Assembly (NCBI GenBank): GCA_965637545.1
Contig: OZ281495.1
Location: 3,224,001-3,288,000 of the forward strand
Reading direction: 5' to 3'
Source: Phallusia mammillata
Taxonomy: Eukaryota
DNA length: 64,000 nucleotides
The notes under the pieces are model-generated. The model did no database searches. It worked only from the letters and a program-made list of their open reading frames with translations, and had not been told where the DNA came from. Numbering within the stretch: position 1 is the stretch's first letter; every line of letters begins with the position of its first letter. A program made the translations under genes and the position numbers. Of the stretch, positions 1 through 50,829 are shown one piece after another.

Positions 1-301
1 ATAGCAACTGCTTCGTTGAAGCAAACACTCAAGTTGTGACGACAAAGCATTGTAGATGTTACGACACAATTTGGTGCCAAAATAACAATTGTTACGCAAC
101 AAAGAAAGTGTCAATTACATAATTATTGTCCGATTGCACATTTGTGCGTTGTGTCAAAATGTCAGAAGTGCTGTTTTATATTATTTAGTTTGTTTTTCAA
201 CTAATAAGCTTTTGATAAGTTGTGGAGAATTTAGTGGCGATCGACCAGTCAAAAGCAGGCGATCGACCAGTCGATCGCGATCGACGTGTTGGCCACACCT
301 G
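1..301. mobile_element. Right end of a hAT (Charlie-like) MITE
   Basis: Ends GTTGGCCACACCTG (rc CAGGTGTGGCCAAC, Charlie-type TIR), with GATCGAC subterminal repeats, followed by cactagga. Confidence 0.6.
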
Positions 302-6926: not shown

Positions 6927-8472
6927 AAATTTTTCATTCAGGCTTTGAGAAGAATGAACATATTTTTAGCCAGTTGTTTTGTTATTTGTAGGATGTGGAT
7001 TAACTGCAAAGGACCGACTTGTATGATGAATATAAAAGTGAGTTTGCAAAGGTGGCTTTCTGTTTGAGAAGAAAGTGTTTTGACACGTGCATTTTTCTGG
7101 TATGTATGTTCATTTAACCTAGTTGTTCTGTGATACATATCTAGGATAACGGTAATTGGTGATTCTGTTCATTTTTTAGATTTATTGGAGATTATTTCCA
7201 AATATTACAGTCTATACAGCTCCAAATTGAAACACAAATATTATCAATTAATTCTAGGATAATAAAGTACAAAATGCAAGCCAGTTCTAAAGAGTGTCCC
7301 TTGTCATTGTAAAAATATTCAGTCACAATCTTCCAACTTTACTTTTTAATAAAAAACTGAAACTGTAATTTGTTTTATTTTAAACACAGGAAAAAAGAGA
7401 AGCAAAAGAAATTTTCTTTAGAGAAAGTGTTTTGACATGGAAAGTCCTTTGTATGGATTGTAGAACTTTTGTACAGTTGCTTTATATCACATGTTTTATT
7501 TGGAATACCCATTTTTATGCATATCCCTGTATGTTGCCCAGCTTAGTACATCACACAATGTTTAGTAAACTACAAATGCAGGTGATTTACTCAATTTGTC
7601 ATAAGCGTCTGATATGCCATTTTTTGTGTGCACATCCTCCACCAATTCTTACACATATAACCAAATTTTGTTGTTGTTGTTTTTATGTATACCATTGTTT
7701 CAACATGTCATTTTCATTTCACCTTTTTATTACTACACAAGTTTTTAGTGTTTGTCATGAATTTTAATGTACTTTAACAATTACATTAACATCTGTGATT
7801 ACCAGCATTATTTTAAATAAAACAAAAACAATGTTGTTACTTATGTCAGTGTTTGCTTGTATGTTACATCGAGCCTGTATATAAGTCACTATTAATTTCA
7901 ACTTTGTGTATGTCACCTTTACACAATCCCATAACCATTCACCATGGCTGTCATGTTTTGATTTTTATGTTGAATCTGTCCACATGTTTGCATATCTTTA
8001 ACTTTATCACTTCTTTTTGAGCACAACCCAAACCATTACACTTTATATATATGGTTGACCCTTGGTTCAAAGCTTGAAGCACAAATCACAACTGATTTCA
8101 TTTCAGTTGTGTATTTTTGCAAGTAGACAACCAAGTACCAACTAAAGATAAAGAGTAATGTTTGGGTTTGGTCCTAAAAGAAGTGTTTAAGACAAACAAA
8201 CCTAAAACCACAATTTAATTGAACATAATGTGTCAAAACATCCGCTATCTGTGGTTTCACCTAGGTTGAATTGTGTGCCATAAGTCAAATTAACTTACAA
8301 GATTGAAATTCTTTGTCCAGATAGTATTAAATTATTTCTAAAGTAATAACTAACACCAACGATTTTGTGACAAACTGCCCTTTTACTATGTGAAATATTT
8401 TGAGGTGTTGGTTGTCGCTACACAAGTATTGGCTTTCCAGCAAACTGGTAGCGGACGCTTACGGCTTACACT

Positions 8473-30340: not shown

Positions 30341-32603
30341 CTAAGCACATGATTTATACTGATATTTATATATTTAAATTTATTTATATGTACTCTCTGC
30401 AAAAGTTAGTTGAACATTACTAAATACTAAATTATATTGAGATCAGCTCATGACAATCCAGCGTATTTAACCAACAACTTCTAATACTGGATCAACTTGC
30501 TTTGTACATTCTGTGCTTTTTGTCAAAGCAGCATGATTCTAACTTTTAATAGTTCATCTCATTTAACTATTGACTTTTCATACGACGCAAGCTTCCAGTC
30601 TAATCAACAAACACAAAAATATTTTACTAATTACTCAAAAAGTAAAAACAACTACATTGCTTCCACTTTGCCACTCGATGTATCGCACTCGATTAGCTGA
30701 AAAATCAGGTGCTGGTTCAATTTCCCTGACCTCAGAAACCCGCATGACACCAAAATACATCTTTTGTTACCGCAAGCCCCAGTTGCATGACGATGATCGG
30801 CAGCAAAACAATGACAAAGTTGTTGTATGCTCGTTCGGACATTGCATTATGACATTTCTTTGGAAATTCGACCAACTATACCTCAACCTCACTGCGCCGT
30901 TCTGTTGTTAAGCAAAAATATTTAAAACCAAATTCTGTGGAAAATTGTCTGGCGCGCCTGTGCTCTTTACGCCATTTATCAATATTGCGGTGAACCCTTT
31001 GTGTGCGAGTTTCGAAAGTTTCAGTGTTTTTGTGTATGTTCAGCTATTGTATTACTTGCGATTTTTTTCAAAAAAAAAAAATTTAATAGACTTTACTTGC
31101 ACTTAACTGCACCCAAAGATAACGTTTTAGGTTTGTTTAAACCGGTAGTGGATTTTGAAAAACAACTGTTTAAAAAAATGACTTTTTACGTTGCAACGGA
31201 TGTCTACCTATTGTTTCAAAAGTTCTGTTGTTGTATGGCCTTATTTGGTTGTTGGTGAAATTTAGAAGGCTTATGGTAACAGAATGTGGAGGTTACTATT
31301 GTGCACTTGAGTGCCATTTAAACGATAAATAGTAATAAAAAACACTCTTGCTGAAAATAATGCAAAACTTCAATATGGGTAATTTTTATGACTTCAATTA
31401 TGTAAAGTACAAACGATTTCAACGGAGTCTGAATATTCATATTTCAAATTGACAAATAGAAAAAAGGGGAAACAAAATCTGCATGACAACACACATTTTT
31501 ACAATATAGCTACAATAGCTACAATACAATATGTATAAATAGTCAAAAAACGAATAAAAAAACACTTTTGCTGAAAAAAAAATGCAAAACTACAATATAG
31601 CTACAATACAATATGTGCTGAAGTGTGACATGACGACAAGCAAAAATAAAACATTTTACTGATAAACAAGATCTTTAGCGTATAACACTGAAAATCGTTG
31701 AACGTCGCCAATGAACGTCGATAACGTGACATGAATGTGACCTCAGAGTCGTTTTGTTACCCTGGACAGCGTTTACAACACACTTTTCATATGACTGCCA
31801 TGCTGCTTTGAAACGTGTTGCTAATTTGTTGATACTCGGATGGGTAAAATGTTTGTTCGAGCACAAACTCTCAAGTTCAATTTTAGAGGCCCGTGTTTCC
31901 CTGACCAAGAAACTTGAGAGACATCGCTTCAACGCAGTGGCTAATCATTCGCCGGACTTGAAAAAAGATACAGGCTGCCCGACGGCGGACTAGTTTTAGC
32001 ACAACGCATTCAGGCGTTGCCAGCCCACCGAGGATTGAAATGAAACAAACAAACCAACAAGCAATCTGTGGCTCGTTGTCTATTTCTGCATTTTTAAAAC
32101 ACGGGTGCCTCACACACTTGCGTCAACCAACTCTCTGATCATATACACTTTATCAGTTTGCCATTTATAACTTTAACTGTTTGTTTAAAATGCTTTGTTG
32201 AGTGCAGCGTGCGTTAGGGGAATATGAGTAGCAACAATAGTTCGTAGTTGGTTGAAAGAAGCCGCAATTGCAAACGTATTTCGAAATTCCGCCATTATGG
32301 AATATCGTTTCGTGGAGACCATTTCTTCTAAAAAATCACCGAACCGTTTCTCGCATCAATGTTTGTTACTTGAATCGGTCCAGTTGGAGCTAGAGATAGA
32401 AATTAAAGTTCATCACATGGGCATAAACTTATCAAAAACTTATGAATGCATCGGTAATTTTGTGTTGCAAACTAGAGGGGATACCCAAGACAGAACTCAA
32501 GTTAGACATCAACTTAGCAAGTTTAAAACGAAACAAAATTATGTTTTAATGAAGGCTAGAAAAATACTGATGTGCTGGTCGATGTGACTGAGATGCTTTA
32601 AAG

Positions 32604-33102: not shown

Positions 33103-36100
33103 TTAAGTGACGATTCTCTAAGAAAAGAGACTTGACGATATCTCGTAGATTTGGATTCTTAAACCTGATCTCCAGTTTTATCTCCTTAAATCCGTGTTTC
33201 CAGTTTTCGCCGTCCGTCCTTCTCAGGCGAAACTGCCAGGAATCTCTGATGCCCTCCAGTATAGCAATATGTTCATCAGGGTTTGCTACCGCGTTTCCAG
33301 CACTAACTTGGATTTGAACATCTTGTCTTTGGTTTCTGCATTTAGAAAATTACAAAGAAAATGATCTATGTTGTTGGATAAGTTTAGTTAAAGTTTCGAT
33401 TCAAACCAAATTCTTTCATATAAATGAGGGAGTGACCACTAGACGACGGTATCCATGCAGTATAATGCAAGAGATGTTGATTTGTGCTTCATAATAACAT
33501 CTTGGGTTGCTGTGGTCGGTGATTGTAGGCTAATTTTAAATACTTCATCTTCAAATATTTTACCATTAACAACGAAAAGACCCTCACCAGACTACGTATT
33601 ACAGGCTAATGCTAAATACGTTTTAACAAAACACAGTTTTTGATTTAAGTACTAACCCCAACAGAATAATCTTGTCAAAAACCAGGTTAAGCGACGTCAC
33701 ATCTTTTGCTGACTCAATGTTGTCGCAAATAAACACATGTGCGATGATTTCGGATACGATGTCTTCTTCGCAAGGAGAAACTGCCAGGATGATTGCCGTC
33801 TCTTTCATCAGACCAAAAAACTTTCCGACAACGTCATAGCTATATACAAATTGTTTCAATTGGTAATGTAAACCTTTTCGTATTATACTGAACAGTGTGT
33901 AATGCCATACATGCTAAAGTGGTCGGTTTTGAAGGTGAATGATCGGGTGGTTTGGTCCATCAAGCATTGTGTCAGAACTTCCCAGTCGGAATCGTTTGTT
34001 TTGTGGCGAATCTTGGCCAAATAGGAAGACAACTTGAATAAGTTGTTTATGAGTTCAATTATGATTATTATAACAGTTTGTGAAAATAGTTAAAAATGCC
34101 TTGCCAGGACAAACAAAACTCAATCACTCAATAACAAGTTAACTTACTTTTACGGCAACAGGAGATGCTTCGACATTCCGGTAGCAGGTAGGGAGTATGA
34201 TTTCTATAGGTTTCCGAAACTTGAAACCTTCTGGCTCACATTTCAACATCGGAGTGAGTCGGTCAACGATGGGATTGTCAACGCCGAATAACGAAGTCTT
34301 AAAAAATACAATTATTTTTCTTTGAGGACTTAAAAACCATAGATGCAACATAGAGCTGTGGTTTTTAAACTTGTTAAGCTTGTGGCCATAGAAATTAAAC
34401 ATTTATTCCCTACCCAGGGCTTGCTTAAAAGTGTTTTGAAATTAATTTGTTACTCTAATACGATGGACGAGACTTTCTTTGGTGTCATGCACATACACAT
34501 TTTGTTGTAAGTCTTAAAACATGAAATGGGACATGAACTCGGATATTTCTCGGCTTTATATTGGGTAGAGCTACTAACACCATACCTCAATGCAGCTTCA
34601 CATTGAGCTAAATTTGGATAGGTGACACAAAGAGCCGAATTATTAATTTACAAGCTAAAGAGGGGTAGAGTTGAGTAGTAAGTTTTTGACGCATTTACGT
34701 TACAAAATATAGTTTATACACATACTTTTATATAGTTCATACAAATTATATACTTATAATTTTTTTTAAGTTAGACTGATGCGACTGATTGTTATTTAAA
34801 AGTTGTAGTTTTAAGACCTTTCGGTTTGTGGATCCATACTTGGAAGTGATTACAATTTGCACCTCATCATCACAAGCACCTTGGGGAATTTTAACTTGAC
34901 AGCCACCCGCTCTTAGCGTTCCTCCTTCCAAACCCACGCGTTGCGAATCGGTGTGATAGATATAGTTCTGTTTGAACAAGATAAAATAGGTTAAAAACTT
35001 ATTTCAACGCTTTCAACCGCCAAAGCATAGAGGTACACGAAAATGCTGCAGTTGTGAATAGGTAACGTTGCAGTAGAGAGCTACAGTGTATGTGCATGTT
35101 TTTACATGGTACAAACCAATATAATAAAAAAGCCACTTTACATTTTGTATAACTTTCATAGCAGTTGTTCTAATTGTTATTACCCCTGCTAATAGAACAA
35201 CAAATTGAGTTTTATTCACCATTTTATCATAAAACTAAATAGCCAATGATCACGTCACATAAGGATAAAGTAAAAGAAAGATCTATTTCTATGTAAATAA
35301 CTAACCCCTGCAATGACCCCTCTTCGGGGGTAATTATCCACAAGTTAACCAACCTCAGGTTTGCGTGTAAATACCGACCTGTTGAGATGTTACTTTTGAC
35401 CCAGTTGAGCGAAAGAAAACTGAAACTATTTCTTCCAAATGTGTAGAAACTTTTACACTGGTTGCAGGTGGTGGTGTATGAGACTTTACATCCTGGTCTT
35501 GGATACTTGATACGTCATTGCCTTCCTTTTTCTGAATCTGTTGTTCACCGTTAAAATTACTAGCAATTTTGAAGAACAGCAGTGCTTTGCGATATTCCCG
35601 TTGATCCATGTGCGTTTTGGCGATTTCCCTTACATCAGCTGCAGTAAATTTGCGTTGACCTTGAAAAAGTAAAATTATCGTGTCGATCTTGTATCCAGAG
35701 TTGCACAGCCATATATAAATCATTGCACTTTAACTAAAATACATTTAAATGACTTCCAACTACATCGTTGCAATAAACACTTCAGGGGAAACGTTTTGTT
35801 TGTTTACGTTTTTTTGTACCCAGTGTAGGGGCAACTTTGAATGCTAACAATGTGTATGCTGTCTTAGGTTTCTTGCTCTATGGAACGCAATGCGGTTAAG
35901 ACAAAATTATACCCTATAACCGTGTAAATACAAGGCGGTTAAAGACAATCCACAAAATGTTAGATTATTTTTTTTTGTAAACTCACGTTTGAGTAACTTT
36001 GTGAATTTCTGTCTTATCAATGACGCTTCTTTATAGTTTTTTTCTTTTAAACTGTTATGGTATTTCTGAATCAGCTGGTCTTCAAGTAAACGTTTGTTTT

Positions 36101-36436
36101 CATCTGAAAGTAAGTGAGTATGCAAATAGTTGTTTTCTTTGCGTTCACTAATAATATGTTCTGGTTGTCGTTATTAGTATCTTTGTTTCTAAAAAAAGTA
36201 GTTATTAGTTAAAGTTATTGTGAACAGTTAGCATTGTGGAAATGCAACAGCATTGCTATGTTAACAGAATTTGGTCAAAAAAAAAGGTTCTAAATTGTAC
36301 CTCACATCGAACTTAAACTTACTTTTAAGAAATTCAAATAGTTCCTGATCAACTGCTTTTGCTTCGTCATATTTCCTTGTTAGAAAATTAATAAAATTTT
36401 GAATCGTCTCATTCAGGCTTATATTATTATATTCAC
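33103..36436 (-). CDS. Module A: second copy of helical/TPR-like + ZU5(HFS) + UPA-like module
   Basis: Exons 36323-36436, 35987-36103, 35379-35659, 34818-34967, 34148-34297, 33911-34011 (..FKTDHFS), 33657-33839, 33103-33335. Four exon lengths (281,150,150,101) are identical to module B, and intron positions are conserved. Confidence 0.8.
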
Positions 36437-37953
36437 CTGAAGATACAAAAATTGATAAAAACAGCCGTGAAACACTTAAACTGTATTGTTGTATGTGTTT
36501 ATCAGTTGTACAATGGTTTATTAGTGCACGTAGATATTTAGCATAAAGGGCTTGTTTCGAATGCAATACGGATGAAGTTAGAAAGGTGGCTTTCTAATAT
36601 ACTTTCATTTTATATATTCTATATCATATTCACCAATTTAATATACACATCATTTGATTTACAAATATGATTGTTTTTGCAAACAAAAACGAATGGGTCC
36701 CCACACGCGTGTTTGTGCGGATTTACGGAAAGAAAATCTTGCGGTTATTTTTAAAATTCTTAAGGACAAATTATTAGAAAGCACTAACCCAAAGTATTTA
36801 TTTTGCATGTCCGTATTCTTTTTGCATCATTATTGTCACATAAATTTATTGTTCTTCAGTAGCCTATTGCGGTGTAGTTGCCGAACGACCGTTTAAAAAT
36901 CTTTTGACATGGTTTTAAATAGCACACAGTCCTTAGTAATTAACAATAATGTTTCTCTCAATATATATTTGACTTACGTATTGTTTCTGGAGTATATGTG
37001 TAAAAATTAAAGAAGCTACGTTGTGACAAAAAAATCATTCTCAACTGTGTTCTGCGTTTCCTACAAGTTGACCTTCAGTCGTCATAAGACGGCCAACTTG
37101 TCAATTACCGTTTAATAACTTTTTATTGGATCTTTAGAAAACATGTAGGTTTTTACCTTCATGTTAATCAACAACGTTTGCCTGAAATGTACAAAACCGA
37201 AATATCGTTTTAATCACTTCTAAGATACAAAACTTTGGCCTAAGCTGAAAATACGCGTGCTAACGTAATAAAACCACATAGCATTACTGCGCTGATGTCT
37301 ACTAATCAAAAAGACTGCCTCTTAAAACGTCCGTCCACGCGTTCAGTTGCGATTTCCCGCTATGCATTAATTTGCCGCAATTGTAAACCAGTGAATTACT
37401 CCCTTGGGCTTTCCAGTGTACACATATTATGGGCTGTAACGACAACCATTAGGCCATTGGGCCGAAATTTTGATCACCAAATGAGTAACCCACTGCAAAC
37501 ATTTTTTTCCTAAAAATTTAACTTTTAGCAAATATAAAACGGGCTTGCATTTCTGACCTAAGGGACTGGAAAAAGTGAAGCCAATTATTTCGGGGTTAAA
37601 GGGGTGCAAAATGGGTAAATCCAATAAAAAGTTAGAATATTTAGAATAGCTTACATTGCACCAACCAACAAAGCATGAAACTCCTAGATCATGTACTTAG
37701 GTCAGTACAGCTGTTTTAAAGAAATTACGTTTTGGGGACCTGTTGTTGAACCCTTGGATCATTTTGGGTCAAACTTTAAGAGGAATAAATATGGATAAAT
37801 AATTAACATCTGTGTAAATTTGAATAAATTTAAAGCACGCTTTCTTGACCAAACGCGTATAACAAACCAGCGTTGGACAGAAAAAAGAAAAAAATACGGA
37901 CAAAAACAATATGTGTCACGGAAACGGGACCCCTAACAAGCAAAAACTTTTAC

Positions 37954-40900
37954 TTATGCCCAAGTGACGTTTCTCCAAGAAAACAGACTTGACGATATCC
38001 CGTAGATTTGGATTGTTAAAACTGATCTCCAGTTTGATCTCCTTAATCCCTTGTTTCCAGTTTTCGCCGTCCGTCCTTGTCAGGCAAAACTGCCACGAAT
38101 CTCTGATGCTCTCCAGTGTAGCAATATGTTCATCAGGGTTTGCTACTGTGTTTTCAGCACTTACTCGGATGTGGACATCTTGTTTTTGGTTTCTGTATTG
38201 GGTTTTACTTACATAAGACCGGTGATTTTGCATGTACAAACTTACAAAAATATAAATAAACCAATACATAGCCGTCTATGGAAGTGCATGTTTGGGGAAT
38301 TACAAACCATAGTATGCGTGATTTATTTTACCTGTTTTTTTTTATTTTATGAAATTTTGCTTGGCATTTTTTGCGTAATATTTATTTGGTAACGTCAGTC
38401 CACTATAAATGCTACCGCAATGATGCAAAGCCATATTTGTCAGAACTTGTTATTCAGAATTATTTAGGCTGCTGGAAAACATGTTTCAACAAAACACCAC
38501 AGTTTTTAACCTTAGAACTAACCGCAGTAGCACGATCATATCCAAAGCTGAATTAAGGGGCTTCTCATTTTTCGTTGACTCAATGTTGTCACAAACAAAC
38601 ACATGAGTCACAATTTCGGATACGATGTCTTCCTCATAAGAAGAAACTTCCAAGGTGATTGCCGTCTCTTTCATTAAATCGACAAAATCGCCAGCAGTGC
38701 AGATTCCGTCAAAGCTTTGAACAATAATTTTGGAATTTGAAATAATTACTAGAATGCATAAACATAACAGTATGAGAACATACATGCTAAAGTGGTCAGT
38801 TTGGAAGGTGAATGATTGAGTTGTTTGGTCCATTAGGCATTGCGTCAGAACCTCCCAGGTAGAACTGTTGGTTTTGTCACAAATCTGCGCAATACATGGT
38901 TGATAGCTATAGAACGATAGGTTAACAGGAAACGCACACCGTTTTGAAACTTTTGGAGGCAGACCTGTATGTCATGGGTTATACGTTGGTTTAAGAAATA
39001 CCTTTTAAGCTAATTTAAAGTATTTACCGAATCACAGGTGAGTATAAACAGCAGCGTATGATATTTTTACTGGTAAACAGCACTTAATTGTTTTAGTTAT
39101 TACTCGTCTGTTTGAATTAAAAAATAAATATTTAAATCGGTGGAGCTGTAAAAGTAAGAACTAAAATCACAAAATTCCGTATACATTAGATATTAAGTTC
39201 GCACGTTAATAGCTCCACCAATAACCTAAGCAGCAGAGACATAATTTGGTAGAAATATACAAAGGCAAAGCTGTGCTTGTCCTTGACTGTCGTTTTCAGC
39301 ACTTACTGCGACAGAAACAGGAAATTCTTTGACATTCCGGTAACATGTAGGGAGTGTGATTTCTTTTGGTTTCCTAAACTTGAAACCTTCTGGTTCACAT
39401 TTCAAAATCGAAGTGAGTCGGGCAACAAAACCATTCTCAATGTCTAACGGCGAAACCTTAAATAATAAAATTATTAAACATTAAAGTTTAGTGATTAGAG
39501 ATAGTACGTATATACCACTGTGTTTTTCCTATTTTGATCATGGGGTTCACCGAGAAACTAGATGTTTTGCCACCCTTGATCCCCAGTTGTTCTTTTTGTG
39601 TTACGACACACAGTTTAAGAATTACGGACACATTGACTATGAATAAGCCAGTAATGGGGACCCATGAAAAAATAATAAAAAAAATCTAAACATAACATGA
39701 CAAAAAATAGTAAATGTGAGGTTCGCGAGAGCTTTTTGAACAAACTGAACCTTCCTTTTAATTTTCTTATTGAAAATCGCGTTTTTTCACACATGTACAA
39801 ACTTTTATCACGCTAACATGTAACATTATCTGCAATAACCTCTTTGCCTCGCTGTAGTAACGTATTGTACTCTACTCTTCATTACCTTTCCCACGGTTAT
39901 ACAACATATGTTTAGCCATCCAATTCAAATCTAGCCCTGTACTTTTTCTTGGCCAAATAAAAAACAAATCAAAAAACTAAACATAAACCAATTGTGTCTG
40001 TTGTTTTTTAACATAAATTCTAGTTTTAGGTGAAGACCTTTCCGTTTGAGGATCCATATTGTGAAGTGATTACAATTTCCACCTCATCATCACAAGCACC
40101 TTCAGGGATTTTAACTTGACAGCAACCCGCTCTTAGCGTTCCACCTTTCGCACCCACGCGTTGTGAATCGATGTGAACGAAATATCTCTGCATGCGAAAG
40201 GATAACAAAAGTTGAAAACAGTAATATTACTCAAATTTCGGCACTCTTCAACCAAACTGCATCACAGCATAAAAGTGCACCATAAAAAAATATTGAGTAA
40301 ACGTTGCCGAAAAGAGGTACAGTGTGTGTTTATGTATGGTACCCCTATTCAAATACATTTTGCAGTGGTTCCTAACCGGGTATGAATTCGTCTCAAGGGA
40401 GCATATTCTTAAACTTCAGGGAGGCATTTATTTTATCTACATGTGGTTTGTAAATAGACATTACAGCTCTGGGAATATAACCTGTGAAGTTAATAAAAGG
40501 CCTAATTTTATCTTGGTATGGTGTAACATCTGCTATGCAGTCTATTGGGTAGGAATGAAATTATTTTTTGTGAAGTGAAGAATTTTTCAAAATAGGTTGG
40601 AAATCATTGTTTTAAAAGCAAAACAAGGGCGATGGATAGGCACAAACCTGTTGAGATGTTACTTTTGACCGAGTTGAGCGAGAGGAACACGAAACTTTTT
40701 CTTCCAAATGTGTAGAAACCTTTACACTGGCTGCAGGTGGTGGTGTATGAGACTTTACATTGTGATCTTGGACACTCGATGCCTGATTGCCTTCCTCTTT
40801 CTGAATCTGATGTTCCCCGTAAAAATTTCTTGCGATTGCAAAGAACAACAGTGCTTTGCAATATTCTTGGTCTTTCACGTGCTTTTTGGCGATTGCTCTC

Positions 40901-42915
40901 ATATCCTCTGCAGTGTAATTGCGTTGACCTTAAAAAACAAAATTACTGCGTCGATATTGTGTCTTAAGCTTCTTATTTTATTGCAAGCCTGTTGAATCAG
41001 TTATATTTGATTCATTTCTCTCTACTCAACAGGTTCCACAATGTTGTAGAGCAATACTGCTTCAGTTTCTCGCCAGAGTTGTAAACGAGCCTGAAATTGG
41101 ATCCCGTACCCGAAAGTACAAGCCCCAAACCCGGCCTGTACCCGAATCGTTTGTGAGAAGACAGTTAAGGCCTGAAAGGTCCGATTTACAACTCTGACTT
41201 AAGCACAAGACCGCGCCCACCACTCGGTCTATTTTTATTAAGTTTGTGTGTTCTAATCCTATTTCGATCGCTTGTGTTTCCCTGAGCAAATATTTTGAGT
41301 GACATTGCTCCAACCCAGTGGTACCCGATGAGTAGAACTAATAAGCTCACCAAATCACTGCAAGCCGTAAAAGTCGAATAAAAAAATAATTAATCTGACT
41401 TGCAATATAACAGGAAGCTCGATGGTAGACTAATTGTGAGTATAACGCATATAGGCGTTCTCCCCACTCTAGAGATGGACCGAGCCGAGCCAGACCCCTG
41501 TACACGGTACCGAGCATCGCTGTTTTGATGCTCAGTGCTCACAATTTGATCTGAGCATTATATTTTCATGTTAATGCCCAGCTAATATACGAAACTGGTG
41601 TTCGAAAGAGTATAAAAGTACAAAAATGACCGTTTTTAAAGCGTTAGATAGTAAAATAACGCGTACATTTTGAGGCCTGTACAGCTTATAATACACCGCG
41701 GATAACGCAAGTGACATGTTAAAAATACGAAACTATCGTTTTATTTTAGAACAAATGTTGGCCGGCTAGAACAAATGTAAAACGTAATTAGCCTCCAGAT
41801 AAAGTTTGCAGACTGACTAATCGTTTTTTAACAAACTCACTTTTGAGCAGCTTCGTAAGTTCCAGTATTGTCGATTTTGCTTCGTCATGTTCAAGGAATT
41901 TTTGAATCAACTTCTCTTCACGTGGACATTTGTTCTCATCTTAAAACAAAATGTTTTTTGAGGCTAACTATTCACTCCAGAATTATTTAAATTGCACAAA
42001 AATTAACAGTGTAAAAACGAGTATCATTAATAAACAATATCATTTTGCCCACAGACAAAATCAGTAACTCATTACCAGGCTGACAACCATGACAGAGGCA
42101 ACCTTACATCCACAGAACTGTAATGATAATAAAATACAACTATTCTGTTGTGTTACACAATTGTTTGCACGGTGGTAAAACTTATGTTTCATTTCAAAAG
42201 CGTAGCGTACGACTTCGCGTGACGTCGTCAATGTTTCAATTGATTCGGCCGAATTTATTTGGCAAAACTGTCGAATATTCGGTTCCTGTTAGAACCCTAT
42301 TTAGCCGATTTGGTGCATTCTAGTTTTACAAATCCCACTTGGATCTAAACAGCAAATATCTTAATTACACTTTGTGATGTTTTTTACCAGTTGCAGCTTG
42401 TTAGTGCACCGGAGTTGAAAAGTGTGATTCGGGTTCGGGCTAAGTTTTTATACTCGGGCTTGATTCGGACCTGACTTCACACTTAGCATCATTTTTGCTG
42501 AATTTTCACCGACTTTCGGGCTTGATTTAATTTAATAGATTTAATATTCAAGGTCAGGTTCGGATCGGATCGGGTTTCAGGCCCTAATTGCAGGTCCACA
42601 ACTCCTAGTGAGACACCGAACCGACTTTTAGATCATTTGAATGTTGATCGACTTTCTCGGATGCATGTTTCGGAATTGCGTATCATTTTGGCCAAAATAG
42701 TTTTTTTCACAAACTATCCTGTTATTCTAGAACAAATGTTGGCCGGCTAGAACAAATGTGTAATTAGCCTCCAGATAAAGTTTGCAGACTGACTAATCGT
42801 TTTTTAAGAAACTCACTTTTGAGCAGCTTCGTAAGTTCCAGTATTGTCGATTTTGCTTCGTGATGTTCAAGAAATTTCTGAATCAACTGCTCTTCCCGTG
42901 AAGGTTTGTTCTCAT
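37954..42915 (-). CDS. Module B: helical/TPR-like exons + ZU5 domain (ending in HFS) + UPA-like domain
   Basis: Exons 42817-42915, 41841-41939, 40648-40928, 40038-40187 (GAKGGTLRAGCCQVKIPEGA), 39307-39456 (LKCEPEGFKFRKPKEITLP), 38784-38884 (..FQTDHFS), 38523-38714, 37954-38192. All are phase-compatible and stop-free. Confidence 0.8.
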
Positions 42916-42920
42916 CTTAA
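41743..42920. repeat. Recent duplication of a 99-nt exon and its downstream intron (41743-41945 vs 42722-42920)
   Basis: Near-identical ~200-nt blocks (DENK..EE.LIQKFLEH.EAKSTILELTKLLK). Confidence 0.92.
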
Positions 42921-43322
42921 AGTAATTGTGTTTGAAAAACTAACTAGTGTATGAGCAAGTCAGACTAAAGAAAATATTACGCTTGTTTACGTTTTATTTA
43001 ATGATGTGTCGGCTTTGTTTACCACATCGCACAAAACTTTAGGCGACGTGCAGTGTCAGTCATGCGTAACCAAAATAAGCAGGATAACAAAAGAAACGGG
43101 AGGAAAAGAGGAGCTGGACTACCATGTTAGTATACTATAGTAACATCACTGTTTGCCTGGCGGTAAATCTTATGTTTCATGTCAAAAACGTAGAGTACGA
43201 CTTCGCGTGACGTCGCAAATGTTTTGATAAATTCGGCCGAATTTAGTTGGCAAAACAGTCGAATATGCTGTTTTCGCTTTGAACCCTAGCCTATTCGATA
43301 CAGTATGTCATCTTATAATACT

Positions 43323-46300
43323 TTAATAATCTTCTAACTTAGATCTTAATTGTTCTTCACGAAAGCTGTACCATGGGCACACAGAAACACGAAATAGCTT
43401 TTGTGTTATTTCATGTACAAGAGAGTAGCCTGTAAAGTGACCGCTAGTCAAATAATTTTTCTTTGGGGCGGATTGGTTTGCGACGCCTAATTTAAGTTTT
43501 TTTTTGTCAGCAGCCAGGAACAAGGAAAAAAAATATATGTCACCTTGAGGTGGATTTGGAGATATATAACCGGAAACTGCTCTCTGTGACGTGGGTGGAA
43601 GCTCCTTGGTGGCTTTATTTGACGCCAAATCTGAAAAGCCAGTGTTCGTTAAGATCAGCGGTTCTCTAGTTATACGCCGGTGCTTTTTAGGTGGTTTGCA
43701 AGTAGCTTTCAGCTAAACTTCGGATCAAGATTTGCAACCCAACTGATCACCCCTGTTTTGGGGCGAACTTTGTGTGCATTTATTTCTGGAAAATATCATT
43801 TAAGTTTCGCGTTGTTTTTAGCATATTGGTTGGATCAAAAAATACAAAAACTTTCAACAGAATTATAGCAATATATGAGTAAACTCAAACGCTTTTGTAG
43901 AAATCTTATTGATGCAATACTTTGGAAATCCGTTGTAACCATTTGATATAATTTCAAAATACACAAATCGCCCGACAAGCAAAATCATCCGGTATACAGC
44001 CCTGTTAGAAAGGCATGTATGATGTCCTTTGTCTCAGCGCTTGTGTCGATAACAAGTGAATACAAATAACTTTATTCTAGCTGTGTTTCAAGTACTCATA
44101 AATTGATTTAAATTTGAGATAATATACAGTAAATGGCTTCGCATTATTAATAACTACCCATTGCGATCCACTGTTAATTTCCTGATCTTGGATTTGGCCT
44201 GCCGCATTTAAAAAGTGGACAAATAAAAGCAGGGCGTAAATCGTAGCTTTGGCTTGTGTTTAAAATCTCTTGATCATCAAAAAGTTTTGCAGTTTTACAA
44301 AGTTGATTTTGAACTCTCATTCAAACAAAATCGATAGTTCGCGTAGCGTCGCTTTTTCTATAATAAATCATAATACGCTATTAAAATGAAGCCGATCTTC
44401 AAAGCATGTCATATAAAAATCTAGCCAACATCTAGATTTGAACGCACCACAGGACTTTATCTAAAAACAACTGGATAACTTTTATATTTCCGTATTACGG
44501 ACCCGGTGTTGACTCTTTTTGGAGTCTCTTCGTCGGCTGTGTTGAGGTTATACTGGTTTTGCCTCGAACTGCGACGTTATCAGTGGCACTTTTGCTTTCC
44601 GAAGTCAAACCCCGTTCGTCTCTTAAACGTTGGAAACCAGGAGCCTTTAGGTCTTGGGTCAATCCCAGTGGTGACGTATGTGTAAAGGTTTTGGTGCTTT
44701 TACGCGTTTCTGTTAAATCTATAAATGTTAAATCAAATGTCAAACAACTATGTGTAAAGAAACAACAAACACACAATGTATATTTCAGAATCGCGATGTT
44801 AATTGTGCAAAACATCTTTGCAAAATAGCAAAACAGAATACACAGTGGTTTTGTTCCAGACTTGTAAGTTACACCTTTCAACCTTACAACGAGATGGTTT
44901 GTACAGAAAACCGATCCCAGGTCGGTTACAAGGAACAACACGGTTGGAAATTTACAACAATGCCAGTCAAAACTCACAAATTGAATAAGGTGAAACCAAC
45001 GTTAAGTTGGGATACAATGAGAAATTTTAGATACGCAGCTTGCTCGTAGACCTAGTTTACCTCAACATTTGCACCCATTTAAAACACTAAATCGTTAACA
45101 GAAAGAAAGCAATGCGTGAGCTCTTACGTTTGGGTAGAAATCGATACAAAAACATTTGATCATAATTCATAATATTTCAAAAAGTATTTTTTGTAGACGT
45201 GCATTACTCCAATGGGTCGGAAACGTACGTCCGCCAACCAACTTATCCGGCCCGCGGTCCTCTTATATAAACAAGTCGGGTTATAAAAACTCACTTTTTG
45301 GGAGGAATAAAGCCATATTTTCATTTGTATTTAGAGTTCTTCCTGTATAACACGTTCAAAAATCCTGGATAAATGTAGGTTATATTTCCGTATCACTGAC
45401 CTGGTGTTGACTCTTTCAAAGGTGTTTTCGTCATCTGTGTTGAGGTTACGTTGGTTTTGCCCTGGACAGTGACGTCATAAATGGCGCCTTTACTTTTCGA
45501 AGTCAAACCCCGATCGTCTCTTAAACGTTGAAAATCTGAAGCCTTTAGGTCTTTGGCCATCCCCAGTTGTGACGTATGTGTAAGGTTTTTGGTGCTTTCA
45601 CGTGTTTTAGTTAAATCTATAAATGTCACACCAGCAATTAAACAGATGTGTATAAAACAGAAAAAACGCGATGGTGACTGTGAAAAACACTTTTACAATG
45701 TAGCAAACAAGAATGACGCAGCGCTTTTGTTTCAGACTTGTAAGTTAAACCTTTCAACCTTACGAAGGGAACGGCGTGAACAGAAAACCGATCCCTGGGT
45801 TACAAAGGACAGCATGGCCGGGAATTTACAACAATGAAAGTCAAAACTCACAAAGCCGCAAATTAAATAAGGTGAAGCAGACGTTCAGTTGGGATATCAA
45901 AAAAAATATTTGATAGCGATATCAGATTGCTGCTTGTATTTGATTGGCACGTGTTGCATTATCTCGCAATGTTTACTTGTTAATGCTGGTGATCCCGAAA
46001 ATGTTACTGCTTGTATATTTTGGATTGTTTTAGGAAAACCTGGGGTTTGTATTATGATCATGCTTTAACTCAGGAAGTTTTAAACCACATGCGGCCTGTG
46101 AACACTTTTTTGGACAAACCACTTTACCTGACGTTAAATCGATCGCATCTATTTTCTCATCTTTCGCACTGCTCTGATTTTTAGTCGAATCGAATAATTT
46201 TTTTTCCTTGGCAATTGTTTTTGTTCCTGGAAAAAAAGGGGTTGTCAGTATTAAGTTTCTGCTGACAGTCACCGTTAAAAAAAACTTAATTATGTCACCT

Positions 46301-49300
46301 TTATGTGGGATTGGAGTTTAAATGCAGTTTTCAATGTTTCTGTGGCTTGTAGATTGCTCAAAGGCGTTTTTTGCCTCAACATTTGCACCCATTTATTTTG
46401 TTATTTTATCGTTGTATTGTTGAAATTGCACATTATTTCAACATATAAAGTCTCATTCTGGCTACACTAGACAATACGGCTGATCTCTTGTCACCAGCTG
46501 CACTGACGAGACCTTACAGGTCGAAACAGTGGTGTGCAATGTCTGCAGTCTACATGTCATTTATTGGCTTGACAGTTCAATGTTATTCTCAACATTTAGG
46601 AATAAACAAACAACTGTAACTGCACATTACCTGACGGTGCCGTGGGGTCGGAATTGTCAGAACCACTCCATTGTGTCGTATAACGAAGTTTTATCGGGAC
46701 CTTGCGTGCAGTAAAATCTAAAAAACATCATTTGTTTTATAATTTTCTAATGCACTATGGCGAAAAGATCCCTCAAACTAATTTAATGATCTAACACTAT
46801 AACGTTGCAATTAGTTTGAGTCGAGTTGACACTTTTAAGATGAGGCATTTACGTTTGATTTGCATCTTAAGCGAGGTAATACCTGATGCCCAAGGAGGCA
46901 AGTCTTGCCTTTTTTCTGTGGGTTTAGTTGGACGTTTCAACGTTTCGCCTGTCTGTGGTTTCGGGTTAAGTTTTGCACCACCTAATTAGCAAATTGTTTG
47001 TCGTTACTAAGAAGGCTTAACTAGCAAAGAACAGTTATATAATAGCAAATGTCATTAATGTGTACATACACAATGGTTTTAACAAAAACAGACACTTATT
47101 TTACTTGAACCTTCATGTGCATCGAAGCGTGTCGTTTTAGTATCTCGTTTATTAGGGACAGTTTTAAGTTAACGGTCTATTAAAGGTCCCTGTACACGAA
47201 CTTAATGCTCAATTAACAAAACACACAAATTTATCGATAATGCAGGTTTTTTGCTTTTTAAACAATGTACGAATTGCCACATAAGTACCTGGGTTCCCCT
47301 CTCTTGACAGGTCGATTGCTGCTTTGGTTGATTGTTTCAGCCTCTCATTGAAAGTTTCGTTCACGTCTGAAAATTTACCGTATTTGAATTGAGTTTAAGT
47401 TTATCTCGCTTGGTGAAAGAACACATAGCTTTATAATTTAATGAAGAAATCACCAAAATTTACGAAACTGACATTAAACAACTAACAGGTACTTCTGACC
47501 TATTCCTAGCTATGTACTGGCCTATTCCTAACAGGTACTAGCCTATTCCAACTAGCAGGTGCTTCTGGCCTAGTCCCAGCTAAGTGACAAAGCTGGAAGT
47601 TCGGTTTGATTCGATGTAACGCCTTCAAAGCTTCAGTGTGCCTGGTGTCCTACGATATATATATGAGTGTGCCGTGAGCGCTGGTCTGCATGAAGGGTTG
47701 GTCCAATTATGCTTAACTCAGCATTAATTACATTGTTCAAATTTATTATAAGTTATGATGGCTGATCAGTGCGGGCGGAAACTACACATAAAGGTCTCGA
47801 TTCATTTACCTGGTTTTGACTCCACTGAGGGCGGAACAACCTTTGCCGATCGTTGAAAAGTTTCTTTGCTTTTGTGTTGGATTTCAGTTGCCTTTGTTTT
47901 AACGGGAAGCTTATCGTGTACATGAAGTGGAGGTTTTTCAGTGCTTTTAAGCGTTTTGGTTGAATCTGAAAATTGACACATAGTTTTTGCAATGTAACAG
48001 CATTCAATGAAGAATTAAGCTGTTCGGGTTTCAAGGCTGTCAACCTCATAAAATAATTGCGTGTACAGCAAACCGACCCGTTATCAGGTTACAAGGATCA
48101 ACAGGGTCGTGAATTTCAACAAAAGTGAAAAGTCAAAAGGTGAAACTAAAGTCGAGCTGATAAACAAAACTAACATTTACACCAGCTAGAAATTAGTTTC
48201 CGATATTGGATAGCAATTTCAACGAGCAACTGTTTATATATAGAGCAACCATTTTGCGTTTATTTCACTTTTAAGTAAAGTCATTACTTCGTTTTCATTG
48301 GGTTTTTGAGAGCATGGCTTACCTGATGTAAATGGTGTTGCCCCTTTTCTTTCTTTTACCGCTTCTGTCTGATGTTTAGCAATTTCAAACATCTGTGGAT
48401 TCTGGGCGAAGTTTGTTTTTCCTTAACAATATATTGTTGTTATTTCACTAATAAAATGCAACATCAAAAATCTAAAATCACGTTACCTTGAACTGGAAAG
48501 GAACTATTCTCATGGGAAATACCTTCCTGTGACGTATGCGGAAGCTCTTCTATGGTTGATCTAGCTGTCAAATCTGAAAGTTTATATTTCAACTGTGTAA
48601 GTCTTTCATTGTTACGTTTATTAATTAGTTCTAAAACTGTTAAAGCTATTGTTAACAGATGGTGATTGGTAAGAAAAATTTATCACCAATTCAGATTCAA
48701 GGTTATAACTGCTGTATATGTAAGTTTCTTTGTAAGCCATTACCAACAACAAGCAATCAACAATAACGTAAGCACCGTCGTGTGGAGTGGTAATGAGAGT
48801 AAAACGCCTCTTGTCTTGTTTATGCGGAAAATCTTCGATGCTTTGATCTGCCGTTGGATCTACGAAATTTCATTGTAAGTTTGCTTCAAATCAAAGCTGT
48901 TTGTACATTTAAGACTGAATGGTGGCGACAAAAACGTTTTTCTTTACCAACTTCCTTGTTGTAACACAAACAACGAACACAAATGCAAATATGAATTCAT
49001 CTACTTTACCCGAATCTCGCGGTAATGTCTTGGCGTCTGTTGTTAGAGTAGACCAGTTTTCTTCGGTTCTTGCTGGTTTGGTGGTTTGTTTGAGAATTTG
49101 AAGGGTCGATGGGTCTAAATGCAAAACGGTTGTTTTAAGTCGGTTTTCTTGAAAAAGTATTTTCGGATTAACGTCATATAAAACCGATTGATTCTGTTTA
49201 AACCAATGAAATGTATGTCCATTGGTTTCACTGTTTTATAGTTAAAAAAGACAATAATCGTCAGCCTTGCTGTTGATGGTTTTGAATCATTATTGAAACT

Positions 49301-50829
49301 GTCGTTTCAAATTTACCGATAAATGCTCTGGCTCTAGATGAAAACTGGTGAAGTTGAACGCACTCGTCCTCATTGAACGTTGACTGTTCATCTAGGTCCA
49401 TTTCCTTTAGAGCTTTTGTGGCTTGTGAAAGTAGATGAGCGGATTTTTGCTTGGCAAGCAATTGATTTAGAATGCGTGTTACTTCATTCATGTTGGGACG
49501 TTTAGTAGGTTTTTGATCCCAGCATCGTTTCATCAGTTTTTCCAATTCTGAGACCATTTTCTTCTCTTCGCTCTTCAAAGTTTCCATCAGTTTGCGTATT
49601 TTGCCACAGTCTGGTCTTTTTCCTTTTATAATAGCATTTATTAAATCTGTTAAATTTACACTTGGATAGGCAGAATTACGCGTGAGGACTTCGTATATCA
49701 AAATAGCAAATGAATACACGTCGAATTCTTTCCTGGGCTTCATTGTTTTATCCTGCAGTTTTTCGGGAGCTGTGTACTGGGGCGTGTATTGTGCTTTCTC
49801 CTTCGTGCTTCTTGCTGAAGAATCTGCAGGTGCTTGGCCAGTCAAAGTTGCCAGCTCTGCCCCGCCGAAGTCGCCAATTTTGCAGTGGAGCTCTTCATTG
49901 AGAAAAACGTTTCCCGGTTTCAAGTCCAAATGCAGCAAACGTTTGTCAGGTAGATTGTGGCAGAACTGAATTCCTTTTGATATTTCGGATAAAATTCGAA
50001 GACGCAGGCCAAATCCCAAAGGAATGTGTCGGTTGAAAAGGAGACTGTTAAGGTCTCCGCCTTTGTAGTATTCCATCACAATTCCCATTGTAAATGGCCA
50101 TTTAACATAGCCAAGGACCCGGACGATATTTTGATGGTTTGCTTTCTCCAAATGCTGCATTTCTTCATGTATTCTGTTAAAATCAGAGGTATATTTTCTA
50201 GTAAAGTTCTTACTCACTCTTCTGTAGTAAATAGGACAGCATACCTTTTCACCAAAGGTTTTCGATCCTTGTCACTGGCTACAGTGAACACTTTGATAGC
50301 AACGATCTCTTGCTTCAGTTTATGGTAGCCATATACAACGTCTCCGAAACCACCCGACCCAGCGACGAACTTCTCGGGATCGCATATGATGTCCTTCGGC
50401 TTAAACTCAGGTAGCTGTGGTCAAAATTGTTTAATCACAAACCGTAACTAACAGCAAAGATGACATTTTGTGCGTTACTTGCCACATGGGCCAAACTATA
50501 GTAAATTAAAACCACGGCAGAAACACTATCCTGACACGATAGATTTCCAAAGATGGGGCGAAATATCAGTTTACATGTAGAATGCAACTACTATCTTATG
50601 TTTTACAGCTATAACTGCATTTTGATCTCATATTACCAAATGCAGTCTCTCGAATAACAATAATGTTGCAAAATCACCTTAACTCCAAACAATTGTCAAG
50701 CGCGAGAAACTTTTAATTAACGCACTTAACATAAGGCTAGTGTGAATGTGATAATCACACTTTGTTAGTTTTCTTCTGCATTTAGTCAAAAAACAGATAG
50801 TAGTAACTTACGTCAGTTGTGCTTGTCAT
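43323..50829 (-). CDS. Gene 2 5' part: RIPK-like kinase + 12 low-complexity cassette exons, with a possible terminal exon 43323-43429 (~850 aa short form)
   Basis: Exons: 50812-50829 (MTSTTD|gtaagt), 50245-50414, 49317-50173, 49010-49114, 48776-48859, 48487-48573, 48323-48421, 47810-47965, 47289-47366, 46883-46981, 46631-46717, 46128-46226, 45401-45616, 44503-44718, 43544-43630, 43323-43429. The 12 linker exons are all phase 1-1 with lengths divisible by 3. Confidence 0.75.
44430..45900. repeat. Tandem duplication (~900-bp unit) carrying the two 216-nt linker exons; third diverged copy around 47810-48150
   Basis: Exons 44503-44718 and 45401-45616 are paralogous, and intron blocks 44860-45020 vs 45730-45900 match. 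A related ACAG.AAACCGA.CC..GGTTACAAGGA block lies at ~48065. Confidence 0.9.
49317..50414 (-). CDS. Kinase domain exons of gene 2 (RIPK/TKL family)
   Basis: GSGGFGDVVYG, VAIK, HLDLKPGN, DFG, YTAPE, DVYSFAIL, IIKGKRP, LMKRCWDQ.P..RP. A 71-nt intron (50174-50244) sits at the same position and phase as in gene 1. Confidence 0.93.

Follow-up and report, generated by a model that had tools for sequence, protein, structure and literature searches.

A probable fusion of a RIPK-like kinase to two tandem ZU5-UPA-like modules in the sea squirt Phallusia mammillata

The window, a 64,000-nucleotide stretch of the Phallusia mammillata genome (contig OZ281495.1), harbors on its minus strand a real, selection-maintained sea-squirt gene, with its ATG at 50829 and its stop at 32327. 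We think it probable that 50829-32327 constitutes a single protein-coding gene, in which a kinase, a linker, two modules and a tail are joined into one polypeptide that would cleave itself. Its spliced chain comprises 31 exons and predicts 1725 aa, with canonical GT-AG borders at all 30 introns; in the rebuilt chain, every phase is compatible and no internal stop occurs. The domains follow in the order RIPK-like kinase, 11 disordered phase-1 cassettes, two rounds of TPR-remnant helices, linker, ZU5 domain ending in DHF/S and UPA-like region, and finally the tail:

50812-50829, minus strand: first coding exon, ATG plus 5 codons (MTSTTD) with phase-0 donor GTAAGT, part of the ORF chain
49317-50414, minus strand: RIPK-like Ser/Thr kinase in two exons (50414-50245 and 50173-49317), with Pfam and PDB matches; the second exon ends in phase 1
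43544-49114, minus strand: 11 symmetric phase-1 cassettes forming a disordered linker of ~477 aa, each taken as the best-scoring phase-1/phase-1 AG..GT pair of its open frame
Cassettes 1-6, minus strand: 49114-49010, 48645-48487, 48421-48323, 47965-47810, 47366-47289, 46981-46853
Cassettes 7-11, minus strand: 46717-46631, 46226-46128, 45616-45401, 44718-44503, 43630-43544
41841-42915, minus strand: helical exons hA1 (42915-42817) and hA2 (41939-41841), each phase 1-1
40648-40928, minus strand: linker exon A, a TPR-like helix pair and then a disordered linker, entering in phase 1 and exiting in phase 0
38784-40187, minus strand: ZU5 domain A (exons 40187-40038, 39456-39307 and 38884-38784), ending in FQTDHF/S
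37954-38714, minus strand: UPA-like region A (exons 38714-38523 and 38192-37954), with a phase-1 donor at its end and no tail exon behind it
35987-36436, minus strand: helical exons h0B (36436-36323) and hB (36103-35987), each phase 1-1
35379-35659, minus strand: linker exon B
33911-34967, minus strand: ZU5 domain B (exons 34967-34818, 34297-34148 and 34011-33911), ending in FKTDHF/S
33103-33839, minus strand: UPA-like region B (exons 33839-33657 and 33335-33103), with a conserved phase-1 donor, TTA A/GTAAGT, at its end
32327-32389, minus strand: terminal exon of 63 nt, encoding the 20-aa tail TPTGPIQVTNIDARNGSVIF and the stop, aligned in 8 paralogues

The initial annotation had proposed that 16 exons chain in frame behind the cassettes without a stop, and the rebuilt model contains exactly that number with AG/GT borders: hA1, hA2, linker A and five ZU5-UPA exons, followed by h0B, hB, linker B and another five. 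Its 12 cassettes, however, become 11 under the splice criteria of the follow-up, and the end that it placed at 33103 is a conserved phase-1 donor, beyond which the terminal exon (32389-32327) adds the tail and stop. A 23-nt gap within the kinase, suggested by overlapping open frames, is also wrong, the solved intron being 71 nt long (50244-50174). The N-terminus encoded by the first exon is similar to P0068, a transcript-derived protein of P. mammillata. Most cassettes are conserved at the protein level in the paralogue P3842 (15% diverged; kinase 85% identical), and all have the same lengths and splice sites in an inverted copy of the gene; some of their borders score weakly as splice sites, the exact 5′ borders of some being uncertain, and donors 40038 (GTCTTC) and 37954 (GTAAAA) are weak. 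Exons hA1 and hA2, copies from a 976-bp tandem duplication, share homology with the opening TPR helices of the kinase-TPR family, and h0B and hB with those of gene 1 in the window and of the paralogues. Linker exon A, whose conservation with copy B and P3842 ends at its donor, is homologous to the start of the paralogues' TPR exon together with their small linker exon.

The open frames are not due to chance. The inverted copy, located at C2:3354001-3380000 and differing at 131 CDS positions, preserves the length of each of the 31 exons, every AG/GT site and the whole ORF; none of the 57 alignment gaps is exonic, all of them falling in introns, with exons occupying ~28% of the span. No stop was seen where 6.2 were expected (P of none = 0.002), and dN/dS is 0.47 overall and 0.22 for the kinase. 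Among module A, module B and P3842, which stand at dS ~0.4, the ZU5-UPA dN/dS is 0.24-0.38, and therefore both modules remained under selection. As a whole, the original observation is thus confirmed, as a canonical exon chain preserved in an inverted copy that is 2.5% diverged.

A search of the kinase exons against Pfam returned Pkinase at 1.7e-38, and the top PDB sequence matches, all 29 with E <= 1e-20, are to RIPK4, RIPK2, RIPK1 or RIPK3 (E = 4e-28 to 2e-23 for RIPK1-4), in agreement with the earlier assignment of a RIPK-like kinase. The spliced model contains GSGGFG at residue 25, VAIK at 44, HLDLKPGN at 144, DFG at 164 and APE at 198. The catalytic-residue set (G-loop, VAIK Lys, αC Glu, catalytic Asp, DFG, APE) is present, and the HLD motif marks the kinase as non-RD. 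Judged by these motifs, it is apparently an active, non-RD, RIPK-like kinase.

This kinase belongs to a lineage-specific family of at least 324 kinase loci, in which SH3-TPR, Kelch and TSP1 modules occur as further fusion partners. Many members appear to share the layout kinase, mini-exon linker, (SH3), TPR, linker, ZU5, UPA and tail, and the published "kinase-TPR" gene models in the family are probably truncated. Kinase exons adjoin ZU5 exons in 23 of 29 cases, which is weak evidence because kinase genes are very dense on this chromosome arm. A transcript-level precedent is P0088 (CAB3265603.1; A0A6F9DRI0), a "RIPK1-like" protein of P. mammillata whose transcript-derived model comprises kinase, ZU5 (FQTDHFT), UPA and tail and maps to C1:6108353-6111143 at 99% identity in spliced blocks; the model probably stems from the de novo mRNA assembly of PMC7237864. 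As a distant paralogue, P0088 demonstrates this kind of fusion, not the two-module fusion itself. Another model, P0077, comprises a kinase and then the start of a ZU5.

Pfam ZU5 (PF00791) is matched by 12 of 41 exon-level fragments (best 6.7e-5) and by P0088 (9.3e-4), and no other family recurs; each exon-level match scores under the gathering threshold because the domain is spread over three exons. A family HMM matches P0088 at 2.6e-21, and P0088 in turn matches the ZU5 of ankyrin-2/3 in the PDB (E = 0.0075). By Atlas features, P0088 reaches 0.95 to ZU5/UPA/FIIND clusters, and its Atlas model aligns to UNC5, PIDD1 and ankyrin, the alignment to UNC5/PIDD1 ZU5-UPA covering residues 318-594 with TM 0.41-0.49; AlphaFold2 on P0088 alone, without an alignment, failed (pLDDT 34). 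Both modules contain DHFS (F1117/S1118 and F1565/S1566 in the 1725-aa model), and HFS recurs in 8 of 8 spliced paralogue modules. PIDD cleaves itself at an HF/S behind each ZU5, where Ser acts as nucleophile and Phe serves as anchor (PMC3210808). Both ZU5 domains of the Phallusia gene have this PIDD-type motif at the boundary with the UPA-like region, where the autoproteolytic ZU5s of PIDD1, UNC5CL, NLRP1 and CARD8 carry H/S-F-S, and self-cleavage is predicted. The exons gave zero matches to Pfam UPA (PF17217, PF17809, PF23679), and an Atlas search with the last UPA exon returned no match; position, size and the partial match of P0088 suggest a UPA-like identity. Thus, of the two ZU5-UPA modules initially proposed, the ZU5 part stands, on the Pfam fragments and the HFS motif, with a UPA-sized region behind it, but the UPA part finds no profile match.

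The terminal exon is the most conserved of the family, with 93% mean nucleotide identity across 8 paralogues as compared to 74-87% for the ZU5 and UPA exons, and it is present in a single copy per locus, always behind the last module. Its tail has an invariant P-x-Q-V-T, which reads PIQVT in the gene under study. PxQxT is a minor TRAF1/2/3/5-binding motif, found in TANK as PIQCT (PMC6125299).

It is likely that one transcript spans the whole chain. The collinearity of P3842, which runs from start exon to tail exon with one module, and the occurrence of just one start exon (with ATG) and one tail exon at each locus, with no ATG belonging to the modules themselves, favor one gene. Unlikely, in our view, is an arrangement of two or three units, namely a kinase-linker gene that ends soon after 43544 (e.g., by read-through to 43323) and one or more internally promoted ZU5-UPA-tail genes, in which case the in-frame chain would be a by-product of the uniform exon phases of the family. 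No run joins 43544 to 42915, as would be expected of separate units: comparison of four runs with 37900-43650 yielded paralogue contigs and repeats only. Furthermore, two paralogue RNA contigs from independent runs both end ~245 nt upstream of ZU5a, which could be the true 5′ end of ZU5-UPA-only transcripts or an assembly break, and internal Met codons exist in the linker exons. However, the helical and ZU5 exons begin in phase 1 or phase 0 with no in-frame ATG upstream of them, and a tail exon is missing behind module A in 4 of 4 two-module copies. The open frame between 43544 and the stop at 43323, most likely intron past donor 43544, is absent in P3842 and, in the inverted copy, less conserved than the true exons. 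In four more distant paralogues, the TPR exon, small linker exon and ZU5a are separated by introns of just ~65-330 nt with conserved phase-0 sites, leaving no space for a separate promoter, and P0088 unites kinase and ZU5-UPA in one transcript model.

No RNA of the gene itself was found in the public RNA runs searched, which would also suit a recently duplicated, unexpressed or decaying copy whose ORF is intact only through its youth. Damage is already visible in neighboring paralogues, with a stop in the UPA exon of P3734 and ZU5b missing from P3779, and three copies are 100% identical in the tested exons, in a region that is duplication-rich and possibly mis-assembled. Against the inverted copy, however, the absence of stops, the purely intronic indels and the constrained dN/dS make decay highly improbable, as does the ZU5-UPA constraint at deeper divergence, where all splice sites are kept. 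It is very unlikely, too, that the one gene acts mainly through shorter isoforms that skip module A or B and so resemble the single-module P3842. The exon phases would permit such skipping, given 15 symmetric phase-1 exons and phase-1 donors at the ends of both UPA regions, so that UPAc-A (37954) could be joined to the tail exon (32389), or c11 (43544) to h0B (36436), both in frame; the single-module layout is also the family norm. Yet both modules are under purifying selection.

For the single gene that we favor, the two-module form most likely arose through a deletion that fused two neighboring tandem-array genes in frame, at junction exons that are each phase 1; the event would have removed the tail exon of the first gene along with the kinase of the second. 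By analogy with PIDD1, each ZU5 may self-cleave at HF/S (NLRP1 and CARD8 cleave at SF/S), generating three fragments held together non-covalently: ~126 kDa (kinase to ZU5-A), ~52 kDa (UPA-A to ZU5-B) and ~18 kDa (UPA-B plus tail). If a signal then caused the N-terminal parts to be lost or rearranged, a UPA-tail fragment could be released, self-associate and signal via its tail. The single transcript, autoproteolysis, the UPA fold and any signaling role are all predictions. A more specific idea, which we consider quite unlikely, is that of a self-cleaving guard class, in which the kinase or the disordered linker serves as pathogen-effector bait or stress sensor and the freed UPA-tail recruits TRAF adaptors via P-x-Q-V-T. 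After HF/S cleavage, the non-covalent ZU5-UPA contact alone would tether the N-terminal part to the UPA-tail; destruction or modification of the former, in the style of the "functional degradation" of NLRP1/CARD8, would allow UPA-tail fragments to oligomerize. A short linear motif would thereby stand in for the death-fold output domain, and two serial modules may provide a two-step release like that of PIDD-C and PIDD-CC.

The initial annotation had further interpreted the gene as a Rosetta-stone fusion of a PIDDosome-like scaffold to its RIP kinase, with no death domain. The latter point is upheld, as none belongs to the gene, which ends in its 20-aa tail and stop. The former is only partly sustained: the RIPK-like kinase, the PIDD-type HFS ZU5 and the transcript-level precedent of P0088 speak for it, but a death domain is missing and the C-terminal modules of the kinase family are many and varied. 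PIDD1 contacts RIPK1 through death domains; since these are missing, the fusion does not reproduce the PIDD1-RIPK1 interface, and it looks more like domain shuffling, in a lineage-specific family of immune type that has expanded, than like a Rosetta stone specific to the PIDDosome.

To our knowledge, no one has described the combination of a RIP-type kinase, two ZU5-UPA modules and a short tail, and self-cleaving ZU5-UPA (FIIND) modules are known from a few vertebrate proteins of cell death and inflammasomes, in each of which a death-fold domain follows. Should the proteins be produced and cleave themselves, ZU5-UPA would serve an invertebrate chordate as a general "break-to-signal" cassette whose output is a linear motif. 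This would widen the known wiring range of autoproteolytic immune sensors and, with many natural variants in one genome, provide a tractable system for the role of UPA apart from any CARD or death domain.

Several known systems share parts of this architecture. RIPK1-4 possess the nearest solved kinase domains, and the non-RD catalytic motif is also that of RIPK1 and RIPK2; unlike them, the 1725-aa model contains no RHIM, death domain, CARD or ankyrin repeats (nor did the scanned exons give a Pfam death-fold match), and the kinase shows only modest RIPK identity and belongs to an ascidian-specific expansion. CAB3265603.1, from the same species and kinase family, likewise unites kinase, ZU5, UPA and short tail in one transcript-derived model, but its kinase shares 43% identity, a single module is present without the TPR remnant or the long cassette linker, and the locus is a compact 3-kb one on another chromosome; its public record names the kinase only.

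PIDD1 (LRR, ZU5, ZU5, UPA, death domain) also has two ZU5s with an HF/S site after each, giving three fragments (PMC3210808), and its Atlas cluster is among the structural neighbors of P0088. In contrast, the Phallusia gene begins with a kinase rather than LRR, has a UPA-like region for each ZU5 and ends in a 20-aa tail in place of the death domain, and therefore cannot recruit RAIDD or RIPK1 through DD-DD contact. Like the FIIND of NLRP1 and CARD8, clusters of which are among the feature neighbors of P0088, it places a ZU5-UPA, predicted to be autoproteolytic, behind a long N-terminal part and ahead of a C-terminal output, and as in CARD8 a disordered N-terminal region lies ahead of the ZU5; it differs in having HFS instead of SFS and two modules, and in lacking CARD and NACHT/LRR. 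Finally, UNC5CL, UNC5 and ankyrin share the ZU5 fold, P0088 matching the ZU5 of ankyrin-2/3 and neighboring the UNC5 clusters over residues 318-594, whereas these proteins end in a death domain and carry no kinase, and the ZU5 domains of UNC5 and ankyrin are without HFS cleavage.

The assembled gene reads on the minus strand from an ATG at 50829 to a TAG at 32329-32327, and its 31 exons (5179 nt, 1725 aa) contain no internal stop and are joined by GT-AG introns throughout, so that the in-frame exon chain proposed in the initial annotation stands. Stop-free frames and splice-site scans place the kinase at 50420-49264, then many short open frames as far as 43326, and then two look-alike exon sets, at 42916-37919 and 36593-33098, of which the second, in a comparison of direct repeats, duplicates the first exon for exon at 76-90% nucleotide identity. 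The cassettes are of the symmetric phase-1 type as had been claimed, although only 11 of the supposed 12 could be defined. The position 33103, previously taken as the gene end, turns out to be a phase-1 donor (TTA A/GTAAGT, the slash marking the exon border) that is kept in nearly all paralogues, whereas the stop after it is unconserved; a tail exon with its own stop lies further on.

Several candidate features were discarded in arriving at this model. Between overlapping kinase frames, a 23-nt GT..AG gap, implying a frameshift or an impossible micro-intron, was dropped; a 71-nt intron (50244-50174) fits, remaining in frame and reading ...KPLVKR/IHEEMQHL..., with the spacing seen in P0068 (CAB3265595.1), a related transcript-derived kinase-SH3 protein of P. 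mammillata. Two conserved ORF-like pieces, 43285-43130 and 42288-42064, were rejected as exons because their amino-acid identity, 61%, is lower than expected from 84% nucleotide identity if coding, and the segment 42187-42284 within them behaves as a repeat that many RNA contigs match. An open frame from 43544 to a stop at 43323, considered as an alternative 3′ end, is unconserved in the single-module paralogue P3842 and falls below exon conservation in the inverted copy of the locus; it would play this part only under the rival reading of separate transcription units. In the introns, short elements at 40438-40511 (within the enlarged intron from the linker exon to ZU5a, the first ZU5 exon), 41089-41341, 42187-42284 and 43058-43127 match many contigs of RNA runs at 85-90% identity and high depth, and are probably dispersed repeats or transposon fragments transcribed elsewhere. 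A 976-bp tandem duplication (41784-41970, 42760-42946) made the two helical exons of module A, hA1 and hA2, which are 90% identical as protein; since both keep intact phase-1 splice sites, they are candidates for alternative inclusion.

The identity of the kinase as RIPK-like was upheld. Its large exon matches the Pfam Pkinase profile at 1.7e-38 and keeps the G-loop, VAIK, DFG and APE motifs, with HLD where HRD would be, and its 29 top matches among all PDB sequences are RIPK4, RIPK2, RIPK1 and RIPK3 without exception, which justifies the label. A protein homologue search in a restricted length window, with the kinase exon as query, gave no close relative below 588 aa.

Each spliced module comprises a 93-aa linker exon, ~132 aa leading to (Q/K)TDHF/S, and then about 140-145 aa; of eight paralogue modules, 272-277 aa long when spliced, all except one are open. 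In Pfam, 12 of 41 single-exon fragments matched ZU5 (best 6.7e-5) and no other family recurred, and the UPA profile gave no match on the exons of the gene. A local HMM of the spliced modules recognizes the C-terminal half of P0088 (CAB3265603.1), another public P. mammillata kinase protein, at 2.6e-21, the match running from ZU5 through HF(S/T) into the initial part of the following domain. The same half of P0088 matches the ankyrin-2/3 ZU5 in the PDB (E = 0.0075); its nearest ESM Atlas feature clusters are ZU5, UPA and FIIND (score 0.95), and residues 318-594 of its Atlas model align to the ZU5-UPA of UNC5, PIDD1 and ankyrin with TM 0.41-0.49. Folding P0088:318-595 without an alignment in AlphaFold2 gave a pLDDT of 34, the ESM Atlas search returned no usable match for the last UPA exon by itself, and in protein homologue searches of restricted length window the P0088 C-terminus matched only itself and an alignment of exon fragments, misaligned to P0088, matched nothing. 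In PIDD1, the HF/S after each ZU5 is the autocleavage site, with Ser as the nucleophile and Phe as a buried anchor, and SF/S is used by CARD8 and NLRP1 (PMC3210808). At the level of sequence, a ZU5 with a putative PIDD-type cleavage motif is thus well supported, and the ZU5 part of the proposed ZU5-UPA modules is backed by the Pfam fragments, the HMM and the PDB; the UPA part found no profile match, and the UPA-like identity of the region after ZU5 is supported only indirectly, by position, size and the Atlas and HMM chain through P0088.

The entire locus is present four times on the contig that holds the window (C2), the four copies of the 18.5-kb gene lying within about 360 kb, three direct and one inverted.

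Copies of the locus on contig C2
near 3.014-3.031 Mb, direct copy
near 3.128-3.146 Mb, direct copy
near 3.256-3.274 Mb, direct copy, in the window
near 3.356-3.375 Mb, inverted copy

The exons tested (kinase, linker, UPA, tail) are 100% identical among the three direct copies, and the inverted copy, 67 kb past the window, is 97-98% identical in exons and introns alike. Compared with the gene, the inverted copy has the same 31 exon lengths, retains 60 of 60 splice dinucleotides and carries all 57 alignment gaps in introns; its ORF is unbroken with 131 substitutions, from which 6.2 stops would be expected had substitution been random (P of none = 0.002), and dN/dS comes to 0.47 for the full ORF and 0.22 for the kinase. 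Modules A and B and the single module of P3842 differ from one another at dS ~0.4, with dN/dS of 0.24-0.38 in the ZU5-UPA exons and about 0.7-1 in the disordered linker. Low ZU5-UPA ratios at this dS argue that both modules are long maintained as protein. The fourfold locus, together with the small contig C28, which repeats kinase genes neighbouring it, is explained either by a segmental duplication of very recent date or by redundancy in the assembly. The array contains decaying members beside intact ones, since two neighbouring paralogues look broken: L045 has an in-frame stop in the UPA exon (5136-5144 region), and L038 has no recognisable second ZU5 exon (ZU5b).

The weak link in the model is the claim that the locus gives rise to one transcript. 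Among public sequencing runs, the sequence words of the gene were matched by two DNA runs only, and hardly at all by runs labelled as RNA, a blank that does not show the gene to be silent. When contigs of four RNA-labelled runs were compared with 37900-43650 at 82% likeness, no kinase-to-module joint, including 43544->42915, was found; these contigs represent paralogue transcripts (85-90% alike) joining ZU5a to ZU5b, plus repeats. Paralogue contigs from two different runs both stop ~245 nt upstream of ZU5a, and this stop may be a true 5′ end, as expected if the modules were transcribed separately, or an assembly break in sequence common to many paralogues. A single gene is favoured by the collinearity of P3842 (kinase 85% identical), which has the start exon, cassettes, one helical exon, linker, ZU5, UPA and tail exon in the same order, by the presence of one start exon and one tail exon per locus, by the lack of an in-frame ATG upstream of the helical, linker and ZU5 exons, and by P0088 and P0077, both kinase-to-ZU5 transcript models of P. 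mammillata. P0088 is annotated “RIPK1-like”, and its probable source is the developmental mRNA assembly that Sladitschek et al. built de novo (PMC7237864); its spliced blocks map at 99% identity to another chromosome (C1:6108353-6111143). On this evidence, a full 31-exon transcript is somewhat probable.

The kinase belongs to a family of at least 324 candidate loci, and in Ciona and Clavelina relatives and other P. mammillata transcript models the modules after the kinase are SH3, TPR-like, Kelch or TSP1. In six more distant C2 paralogues, ZU5a is preceded at 0.3-2 kb by a single TPR exon of about 275 aa, and four of the six were examined base by base for TPR-linker-ZU5a joints.

TPR exons at paralogue loci (220-280 aa)
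L036:6336-7178, minus strand, TPR exon
L040:6695-7363, minus strand, TPR exon
L047:7049-7873, minus strand, TPR exon
L050:6653-7480, minus strand, TPR exon

In these four paralogues, 150-330 nt separate the phase-0 donor of the TPR exon from a small linker exon of phase 0-0, and an intron of ~65 nt separates that exon from ZU5a; an SH3 exon was seen in one of the distant paralogues. The layout of the family seems to run kinase, mini-exons, (SH3), TPR, linker, ZU5, UPA and tail. With TPR exon, linker exon and ZU5a so close together and all compatible in phase (0), the kinase-(SH3)-TPR genes probably extend further than they seem, into ZU5-UPA-tail, and separate “hidden” ZU5-UPA genes interleaved with them are the less likely reading. 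The first helices of the paralogue TPR exon have homologues in the helical exons hA1 and hA2 of module A, in h0B and hB of module B and in the first half of both linker exons; these pieces are also homologous to the 3′ exons of a kinase-SH3-TPR gene at window 3284-18475, and the remainder of the TPR domain is deleted in the 50829-32327 gene. The neighbour at 3284-18475, on the minus strand, also encodes a RIPK-like kinase, which shares 53% identity with the one studied; the homology of its 3′ exons (4027-3821) is to h0B and to the first half of the linker exon, and the window contains no ZU5-UPA exon after this gene. The last ~90 residues of P0068 resemble a linker mini-exon of L050 read in another frame, which hints at a splice form that is frame-shifted and truncated in this embryonic transcript.

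The 63-nt terminal exon (32389-32327, minus strand) recurs in every paralogue 0.3-1.2 kb downstream of the UPA-end donor; its acceptor is invariant, and it codes for T-P-T-G-P-x-Q-V-T-x-I-D-A-R-x-G-S followed by three further residues and the stop. Across window 32327-32389 and L031, L036, L038, L040, L042, L045 and L050, it is the best-conserved exon, at 93% mean nucleotide identity vs 74-87% for ZU5/UPA exons. The conservation extends to synonymous sites, which might reflect gene conversion, a splicing signal or an RNA element. Genome-wide, 14 tail exons each follow a last module, and none follows module A in the four two-module copies. The P-(N/I/S)-Q-V-T of the tail fits PxQxT, a minor TRAF-binding motif (PMC6125299); as a post hoc match, this candidate TRAF-type motif is only a lead. 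The tail of P0088 is without P-x-Q-V-T, and the tail of the 50829-32327 gene is without the RHIM core I/V-Q-I/V-G.

Modules A, B and that of P3842 are about equally diverged from one another, and module B opens with h0B, the very first TPR helix, absent from module A and P3842. The simplest history would be a deletion in a tandem array that joined the phase-1 donor at the UPA end of one gene to the TPR exons, likewise phase 1, of the following gene, losing in the same event the tail exon of the first and the kinase of the second. If the product were cleaved at F1117/S1118 and F1565/S1566, fragments of about 126, 52 and 18 kDa are predicted, which might be held together as in PIDD1, NLRP1 and CARD8.

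The locus had been interpreted as a PIDDosome-RIPK “Rosetta stone” without a death domain. That domain is indeed absent from the 1725-aa gene, and output cannot be via a death-fold interaction; this absence and the promiscuity of both partners, the kinase joining many other modules, weaken the Rosetta-stone idea. In the literature found, no protein uniting a kinase with ZU5-UPA is described, and the sole precedent for kinase-ZU5-UPA is a public entry, uncharacterised, whose annotation names just the kinase. The component parts, by comparison, are already known: the RIPK-like kinase, the ZU5 with HFS and the UPA-like region.
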